From the NCBI RefSeq assembly GCF_037042905.1, contig NC_087249.1, positions 49,104,001-49,168,000 on the forward strand: DNA of 64,000 nucleotides, in the 5' to 3' direction. This DNA comes from Lytechinus pictus. Its lineage: Eukaryota. The notes beneath the pieces were generated by a model that was not told the DNA's origin, ran no database searches, and saw only the letters and a list, made by a program, of their open reading frames with translations. Positions within the stretch are counted from its first letter, which is position 1; each line of letters begins with the position of its first letter. This document shows, piece after piece, positions 26,223-26,558 of this stretch. The translations under genes and the position numbers were made by a program.

Positions 26223-26558
26223 TCATATAATCAGTTTCTCCTTGAGTTGTTTGTTCTTGACCACCGTGCCATGCTGCTTGCAGAAGAGACGATCGTCCGC
26301 GATATCCAGGTTCCACAGGGTCAAGGTCCTGCTGCACTCGCTGCACTTCTGGCACGTCCGGTGGAAGACCCGACCTTCGAACTTGCTCATCTCGTTGGGG
26401 TAGGCGGACTTCTCGCACACCATGCAACAGTCGATCATGGGCTGGAGGGGCGGCCGCGAGGACGACGAGGGATTAGTGGACAGTCTGGAGGGTCCCGTTG
26501 TGGGTGCCGTTGACCCTTTGAGTTTGTTGGAACTTGTTGATGAGGGCTTTGACGGAAC
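26223..26558 (-). CDS. Terminal exon: Ser/Pro/Thr linker plus LIM domain (EPLIN/MICAL/CRP-like class)
   Basis: Acceptor CTCTCTCTGTTGTATAG|. In phase 0 it reads VPSKPSS...PMIDCCMVCEKSAYPNEMSKFEGRVFHRTCQKCSECSRTLTLWNLDIADDRLFCKQHG...II*, i.e. C-x2-C-x17-H-x2-C-x2-C-x2-C-x17-C-x2-H. Confidence 0.93.
   Translation of the reverse strand, partial: VPSKPSSTSSNKLKGSTAPTTGPSRLSTNPSSSSRPPLQPMIDCCMVCEKSAYPNEMSKFEGRVFHRTCQKCSECSRTLTLWNLDIADDRLFCKQHGTVVKNKQLKEKLII

Follow-up and report, generated by a model that had tools for sequence, protein, structure and literature searches.

The INK4a/ARF products of CDKN2A are a known case in which a shared exon is read in two frames. An earlier survey of dual-coding exons was made by Chung et al. 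2007 (PMC1868773), and dual-coding exons are annotated in more than one-third of human coding genes, among them ancient dual-coding terminal exons (e.g., that of DCX; Tress et al., bioRxiv 2026, 10.64898/2026.05.28.727796). In the described cases a non-triplet splicing choice upstream decides how a shared exon further downstream is read, the C-termini of the two isoforms are unrelated and the alternative one is the shorter, the frame is kept over long evolutionary time, and the synonymous divergence of the main frame is depressed within the overlap. The terminal exon described here, from a sea urchin gene, is like the known dual-coding exons in each of these respects. It is unlike them in that the case is echinoid, the gene has no described function and the overlap is short (84 nt), in that it is the alternative frame that is constrained while the overlap encodes, in the LIM frame, a tolerant linker of low complexity, and in that there are at least two separate routes into the alternative frame (a 64-nt donor shift and a 19-nt cassette).

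A 64,000-nt stretch of Lytechinus pictus DNA carries the gene on its minus strand; the whole of this stretch was analysed and is called the window here. The window holds four runs of N (10890-11232, 11253-11448, 11527-11675, and 12040-12654), together 1303 bases. The exons of the gene and the features of its terminal exon are as follows:

57099.., 53457.., about 46428.., 38899..38131, 35830..35692 or ..35628, and 26558..26223, minus strand: exons of the gene
26223..26558, minus strand: coding part of the terminal exon, with the acceptor ttgtatag/ at 26559+, and including the LIM-frame stop TGA at 26225-26223
26473..26558, minus strand: dual-coding overlap, with VPSKPSSTSSNKLKGSTAPTTGPSRLST in the LIM frame, and SVKALINKFQQTQRVNGTHNGTLQTVH in the alternative frame (26556..26476) followed by TAA at 26475-26473
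26271..26426, minus strand: LIM zinc-binding domain, Pfam PF00412, residues 45-96 of the exon product

The first base of the exon is 26558, directly after an acceptor that reads ...ctgttgtatag on the minus strand. Frame 0 begins VPSKPSSTSSNKLKGSTAPTTGPSRLSTNPSSSSRPPLQPMIDCC... / VPSKPSSTSSNKLKGSTAPTTGPSRLSTNPSSSSRPPLQPMIDCCMVCEK... and continues through the LIM domain to the TGA at 26225-26223, and its product is identical to residues 778-888 of the RefSeq isoform X2. The match of this product to PF00412 had an E-value of 5.1e-09 and scored 36.7 bits against a cut-off of 22.9, the Cys/His zinc-ligand pattern is visible in the translation, and the LIM domain is the only above-threshold domain in the gene. 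In the offset-2 frame the same exon encodes SVKALINKFQQTQRVNGTHNGTLQTVH, with a stop at the TAA of 26475-26473. The original prediction, made from the letters of the window, had stated that entry in phase 0 would give a Ser/Pro/Thr linker and then the LIM domain, and that entry in phase 1 would give (G)SVKALINKFQQTQRVNGTHNGTLQTVH and a stop; the translation and the Pfam match bear out the former, and both the peptide and the coordinates of the latter were reproduced exactly.

The frame in which the terminal exon is read depends on four features that lie between it and the body of the gene:

35692..35830, minus strand: short form of the penultimate constitutive exon, ending ...KKLAPK in phase 0; donor AAG/gtgaaa, GT at 35691-35690
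35628..35691, minus strand: 64-nt extension of that exon, encoding VKDDFSSPTDTLDLVDQPKTR(G) and ending in phase 1; donor GAG/gtatag, GT at 35627-35626
34826..34853, minus strand: small cassette with two acceptors 9 nt apart, giving a 28-nt form from 34853 and a 19-nt form from 34844
33296..33346, minus strand: in-frame cassette exon of 51 nt, DVEDSSDFSQENSDKVM, which keeps phase 0 and hence the LIM frame (isoform X1)

Donors of both phase 0 and phase 1 had been noted upstream, and both were confirmed, at the exon ends 35692 and 35628. Since 64 is not a multiple of three, the two donors enter the last exon in different phases: the short donor spliced to 26558 leads into the LIM frame (the resulting junction, APK/VPSKPSS, is present in RefSeq X2), and the long donor spliced to 26558 leads into the alternative frame (RefSeq X3 contains the extension). 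In its 28-nt form the small cassette reads LL-stop and gives isoform X4, which ends ...APKLL. Inclusion of the 19-nt form (34844..34826), whose length is not a multiple of three, would likewise put the last exon in the alternative frame; L. variegatus X3 is annotated with this form, whereas only the 28-nt form is annotated in L. pictus (X4). The homologous 19 nt of L. pictus are nonetheless intact and open (...APKIRYLSHGSVKAL..., i.e., IRYLSH+G). The LIM frame is reached from the short donor, with or without the 51-nt cassette, and the alternative frame is reached either from the long donor or from the short donor plus the 19-nt cassette, the latter route being annotated in L. variegatus. As splice phases account for both products, we rejected programmed ribosomal frameshifting as unnecessary. 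The small cassettes were located only through the annotated isoforms and not through our composition scan, which turned up nothing convincing when the region from 35611 to 26558 was scanned for further hidden coding exons. The cassette of Strongylocentrotus purpuratus that is orthologous to the 51-nt one is 39 nt long (L003:65484-65522, DMDLSVENSERHV); the flanking splice sites of the two are conserved, and their length and sequence have strongly diverged.

An exhaustive HMMER search with the exon product as query, for which names were obtained from cluster look-ups, identified an 888-aa protein that was 100% identical across the whole exon, together with three close relatives. In L. pictus the gene has four RefSeq isoforms, X1 to X4:

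X2 (P0001), 888 aa: ...APK/VPSKPSS...LIM
X1 (P0151), 905 aa: X2 with the in-frame 51-nt cassette (33346..33296)
X4 (P0152), 779 aa: ends ...APKLL
X3 (P0153, XP_063955207.1), 826 aa: ends ...APKVKDDFSSPTDTLDLVDQPKTRGSVKALINKFQQTQRVNGTHNGTLQTVH

In-silico splicing of the window reproduced all of the L. pictus tails, both LIM and LIM-less. Comparison of the X2 and X3 tails shows that two transcripts of the gene share coding nucleotides which they translate in different frames, and the proposal that one gene makes C-termini with and without the LIM domain from overlapping frames agrees letter for letter with RefSeq X3. A search with the tail found the same LIM-less ending in L. variegatus X2; isoform X1 of that species has the LIM domain, and its X3 (...APKIRHQSLGSVKALINKF...) enters the alternative frame via the 19-nt cassette. 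In S. purpuratus, X4 is LIM-less (...DQPKTRGSVKALINKFQQTQRVNGNDNRTLQSVH) in two annotation releases, and X1 and X2 carry the LIM domain. The LIM-less isoform was not among the Diadema models that we retrieved. In the annotation, entry into the terminal exon (26558 in L. pictus) is not confined to a single phase, as both phases are used by models in three species. Support for the transcripts is indirect and comes from these RefSeq models made by Gnomon, which is not known to build alternative variants without aligned transcripts. Both isoforms are already in the public annotation, and it is the explicit recognition of dual coding that is new.

The RefSeq product names in this gene family include FK506-binding protein 5-like, neurofilament heavy polypeptide(-like), DNA ligase 1, nucleolar protein dao-5, and proteoglycan 4; they look like low-complexity (Glu/Lys-rich) artefacts and are misleading. 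A separate L. pictus gene model, LOC129261315 (P0163), encodes a 351-aa protein that clusters with the N-terminal part of the L. variegatus isoforms, and the long isoforms of S. purpuratus and Diadema have N-terminal sequence similar to the LOC129261315 product. This protein is not encoded within the window, and the L. pictus locus may be split over two models, or alternative promoters may be in use.

We consider an alternatively spliced dual-coding terminal exon to be the likely explanation of this arrangement, with a probability of roughly 85%. Under this reading, splicing from the short donor (with or without the in-frame 51-nt cassette) would cause the first 84 nt to be read as a disordered Ser/Thr/Pro linker, followed by the C-terminal LIM domain. 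Splicing from the long donor (or through the 19-nt cassette, at least in L. variegatus) would make the same 84 nt encode a short amphipathic helix motif, SVKALINKFQQTQ, and a tail of 13 further residues. Translation of the alternative frame would end at the TAA, and the LIM-coding bases would become 3' UTR. It is an established rule of junction-dependent NMD that a stop in the last exon escapes it, and because the TAA is in the last exon the LIM-less mRNA should escape this decay and not be an NMD target. We infer that both proteins are made, and that the switch gives up a LIM-mediated interaction and gains one more copy of the helix motif that the gene already encodes.

Codon composition differs between the two frames over the same bases. 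The 27 codons of the alternative frame have a GC3 of 0.78 and a C3 of 0.63, versus 0.50 and 0.29 for the 28 LIM-frame codons, and the GC3 of the remainder of the LIM frame, downstream of the overlap, is 0.84; codon bias tracks the alternative frame as far as the TAA and the LIM frame beyond it. The strongly C-ending codons that had been noticed in the alternative frame relative to the LIM frame are thus confirmed by the C3 values. GC3 was more informative here than a codon-usage log-likelihood model trained on the Glu/Lys-rich exons of the gene, which did not separate the frames. A change of frame in codon bias near the TAA is the classic look of a frameshift error, and in some relatives (Glandiceps) a helix-like motif precedes the LIM domain in the same reading frame, so that one might suppose a single motif-linker-LIM frame which was broken by a 1-nt assembly error or by a private mutation. 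This we regard as exceedingly improbable, since the same frame relation and the same TAA are found in five independent assemblies from five species, the differences in length between the stop and the LIM domain are all multiples of three in the LIM frame, and annotated models use both phases in more than one species, as noted above. An assembly frameshift or a pseudogene was rejected on the grounds that the five species share the frame relation and the stop.

The openness of the alternative frame over 27 codons is not beyond chance (P=0.085 with random codons of the gene, and P=0.45 with shuffled codons of the exon). Unlike openness, the motif match and the cross-species substitution pattern, both described below, do go beyond chance, and on these two we rejected a chance open frame despite the non-significant openness.

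We compared the L. pictus locus with the genomic loci of Diadema setosum, D. antillarum, S. purpuratus, and L. variegatus, making five echinoids in all. The alternative frame is open from the first base of the exon in all five and ends at the homologous TAA (QTVH-stop or QSVH-stop), its sole length change being one 3-nt deletion in Diadema. Over its first 28 nt the exon does not differ between the five species, and over the first 14 codons of the alternative frame the protein is unchanged in the three camarodonts, with L replacing RV after QTQ in Diadema. Likewise the 64-nt extension is open in 5/5 echinoids and keeps ...LDQPKTRG, and both donors are retained in 5/5. When orthologues were checked for the GSVKALINKFQ frame, as the original prediction had proposed, the frame proved to be conserved in each of the five echinoid genomes, and the position of its stop with it. 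Lytechinus belongs to Echinacea and Diadema to Diadematoida within Acroechinoidea, which are different major lineages of Euechinoidea, and the split between the two genera is probably about 200 million years old or more. The near-saturated pS of the LIM domain (see below) shows that Lytechinus and Diadema are far apart. On the genomes compared, the dual-frame feature goes back at least as far as the ancestor that Camarodonta and Diadematoida share.

To quantify constraint we used pairwise Nei-Gojobori counts, with substitution events assigned by parsimony. For the alternative frame, pN/pS within the overlap was 0-0.26, and for the LIM frame it was about 1 or more. Approximately 19 substitution events were counted in the overlap, and 12 of the 19 are synonymous in the alternative frame, versus 22% expected (binomial p=1.3e-4); in the LIM frame only about 4 of the 19 are synonymous, which is near the neutral share. 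Between L. pictus and L. variegatus the overlap has four differences, which make 4 synonymous and 0 nonsynonymous changes in the alternative frame and 0 synonymous and 4 nonsynonymous changes in the LIM frame. Between L. pictus and D. setosum the values are:

Overlap, alternative frame: pS 0.38, pN 0.10
Overlap, LIM frame: pS 0.15, pN 0.16
LIM domain, LIM frame: pS 0.63, pN 0.16

The events are unevenly spread along the tail. Over the first 14 codons (SVKALINKFQQTQR) all six are synonymous in the alternative frame (binomial p=1.1e-4), and five of these six fall on second positions of the LIM frame, whereas the second half of the tail (VNGTHNGTLQTVH, 13 residues) is under weak constraint, with about 6 synonymous versus 7 nonsynonymous events. 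Third positions of the alternative frame make up 9 of the 17 variable columns, and all 9 are synonymous in that frame. Invariance by codon position of the LIM frame differs accordingly between the overlap and the LIM domain:

Overlap: position 1, 25/28; position 2, 19/28; position 3, 22/27
LIM domain: position 1, 51/67; position 2, 56/67; position 3, 29/67

The wobble sites of the LIM frame are invariant more often in the overlap (22/27) than in the LIM domain (29/67; Fisher p=0.0011), and the fastest class in the overlap is position 2 of the LIM frame, i.e., position 3 of the alternative frame, while the pattern in the LIM domain is normal. Within the overlap no separate constraint on the LIM frame is apparent beyond its staying free of stops, as far as can be told from 84 nt, which give low power. 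Purifying selection on the alternative frame across echinoids is supported by these substitution counts, and this evidence for it is new; "selection on both frames" applies only loosely, in that neither frame closes.

These data bear on whether the LIM-less transcript might be splicing noise or a regulatory by-product, with the conservation at the start of the exon coming from splicing enhancers or RNA structure near the acceptor. It is true that the openness of the second frame is by itself unremarkable (P 0.085-0.45), that bases adjacent to acceptors often carry splicing signals, and that our search for short transcript-derived fragments carrying the junction or the tail found nothing. We nevertheless judge such noise to be improbable. 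The variable sites have a 3-nt periodicity that is locked to the alternative frame, and it is this codon periodicity of the constraint that makes a reading in terms of enhancers or RNA structure unlikely. In addition, the sole indel is of 3 nt and the homologous stop is present in 5/5 species, the 64-nt extension, which is needed only for the LIM-less isoform, stays open and has a conserved donor, and a motif of the protein recurs in the encoded peptide.

A plain truncation switch, in which the isoform is real and the loss of the LIM domain is all that matters, the sequence of the tail being irrelevant, would fit the fairly free evolution of the distal 13 residues of the tail, and many such alternative C-termini are short and disordered (Tress et al. 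2026 preprint). We think this slightly less probable even than noise, given that the events in the first 14 codons are synonymous without exception, that the wobble sites of the LIM frame are frozen, and that the length of the tail and the position of its stop are conserved.

The motifs that the tail was noted to resemble are found upstream in the gene:

38131..38899, minus strand: upstream exon with the motifs SVAASKALFE and SLKDRISR(FQ)

SVAASKALFE is encoded at 38456-38427, and SLKDRISRFQ is encoded across the junction 38131/35830. The ungapped BLOSUM62 score of SVKALINKFQ against SLKDRISRFQ is 24, a value that shuffled tails reach with P=1.5e-4, and the maximum score among other 10-mers of the gene in any frame (n=1650) was 15; the repetition of an upstream motif by the tail therefore stands, as a match beyond chance. 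We also ran AlphaFold2 on the last 187 residues with an alignment of 4 close sequences. It predicted two short helices, LKDRISRFQNLATK and VKALINKFQQTQRVNG, one at each of the two motifs, with a local pLDDT of about 80, and the rest as disordered (mean pLDDT 53, pTM 0.16). Taken together, the motif match and these helices, from what is a weak model, suggest that the LIM-less isoform ends in something like a second copy of the helix motif encoded upstream in the gene. The protein-atlas look-alikes of the tail (CRACD-like, Xin, caldesmon, and CARMIL) are disordered actin regulators, and their similarities of 0.59-0.77 are at the level of leads, to which we gave no weight. As the gene looks like one for a disordered cytoskeleton-associated protein, an actin-related partner for the helix motif is plausible. 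What the analysis shows of the helix that had been called actin-binding-like is a predicted short helix and a likeness to the upstream motif; weak hints of actin binding come from these look-alikes and from the LIM-domain and DUF4592 matches given below.

The nearest solved structures to the LIM domain are CRP1 (E=8.7e-13) and the LIM domain of EPLIN (2d8y; E=9.4e-09). The urchin protein is like EPLIN/LIMA1- and CRP-type proteins in having a single LIM domain of the form C-x2-C...H-x2-C-x2-C-x2-C...C-x2-H. Short helix-like S-x-K-x(4)-K/R-F/Y-Q motifs lie in its disordered flanks, and EPLIN may carry similar ones, which is a lead. Unlike that of LIMA1, which is central between two actin-binding regions, the urchin LIM domain is at the extreme C-terminus, and the likeness to EPLIN/LIMA1 is one of LIM similarity alone.

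CRACD proteins are not known to have a LIM domain, in which the urchin protein differs from them, and it resembles them in being long, disordered, and Glu- and Lys-rich. CRACD and CRACD-like proteins are capping-protein inhibiting regulators of actin dynamics (PMC9949038). S. purpuratus X1 matched DUF4592 (PF15262, the CRACD family) over profile positions 20-124 of 124 with 24.7 bits (E=3.5e-05), and L. pictus X3 gave a partial match of 18.7 bits; both scores are below the Pfam cut-off of 27, so that they are suggestive only and do not place the protein in the family. This sub-threshold score is a further difference from CRACD, and the Atlas similarity to CRACD of 0.69-0.77 is again at the level of a lead.

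Orthologues with the same C-terminal LIM exon were identified in the crinoid Anneissia japonica (P0035) and in the hemichordate Glandiceps talaboti (P0064 and its isoforms). The second frame is absent from both, their other frames closing quickly or being without such a motif, and the annotated Glandiceps isoforms that we retrieved included no LIM-less isoform of the echinoid type. Two homology searches, one with the tail and one with the C-terminal region, returned echinoid proteins only, and no asteroid, holothuroid, or ophiuroid orthologue. The last exon of Glandiceps (L005:30087-30260) opens in the LIM frame with a helix-like TVASRRQVFN (QTVSITVASRRQVFNRE...); of its other frames, one closes after a few codons and the other is open for ~56 codons, and neither has a SVKALINKFQ-like motif.

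One could imagine from this that the frame was split, i.e., that the ancestral last exon held helix motif, linker, and LIM domain in one frame, that a frameshift in the echinoid stem separated the motif from the LIM domain, and that donors of two phases rescued both as mutually exclusive C-termini. If this were true, the first 84 nt would originally have been read in the alternative frame, with the Ser/Thr/Pro linker as an overprinted newcomer, and it would follow that codon bias and selection keep to the alternative frame. We consider this origin speculative and rather unlikely because the homology of the Glandiceps motif is weak: its hand-scored BLOSUM62 against SVKALINKFQ was about 4, versus 17 to the other upstream motif.

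As an instance of dual coding this exon is an ordinary example of a known phenomenon and opens no long-standing question. It does provide a clean, evolutionarily supported dual-coding terminal exon from an invertebrate, the studies that we found describing mammalian or vertebrate genes. For the biology of sea urchins, it points to a conserved isoform switch, between a LIM domain and an extra helix motif, in a gene that is uncharacterised and probably associated with the cytoskeleton.
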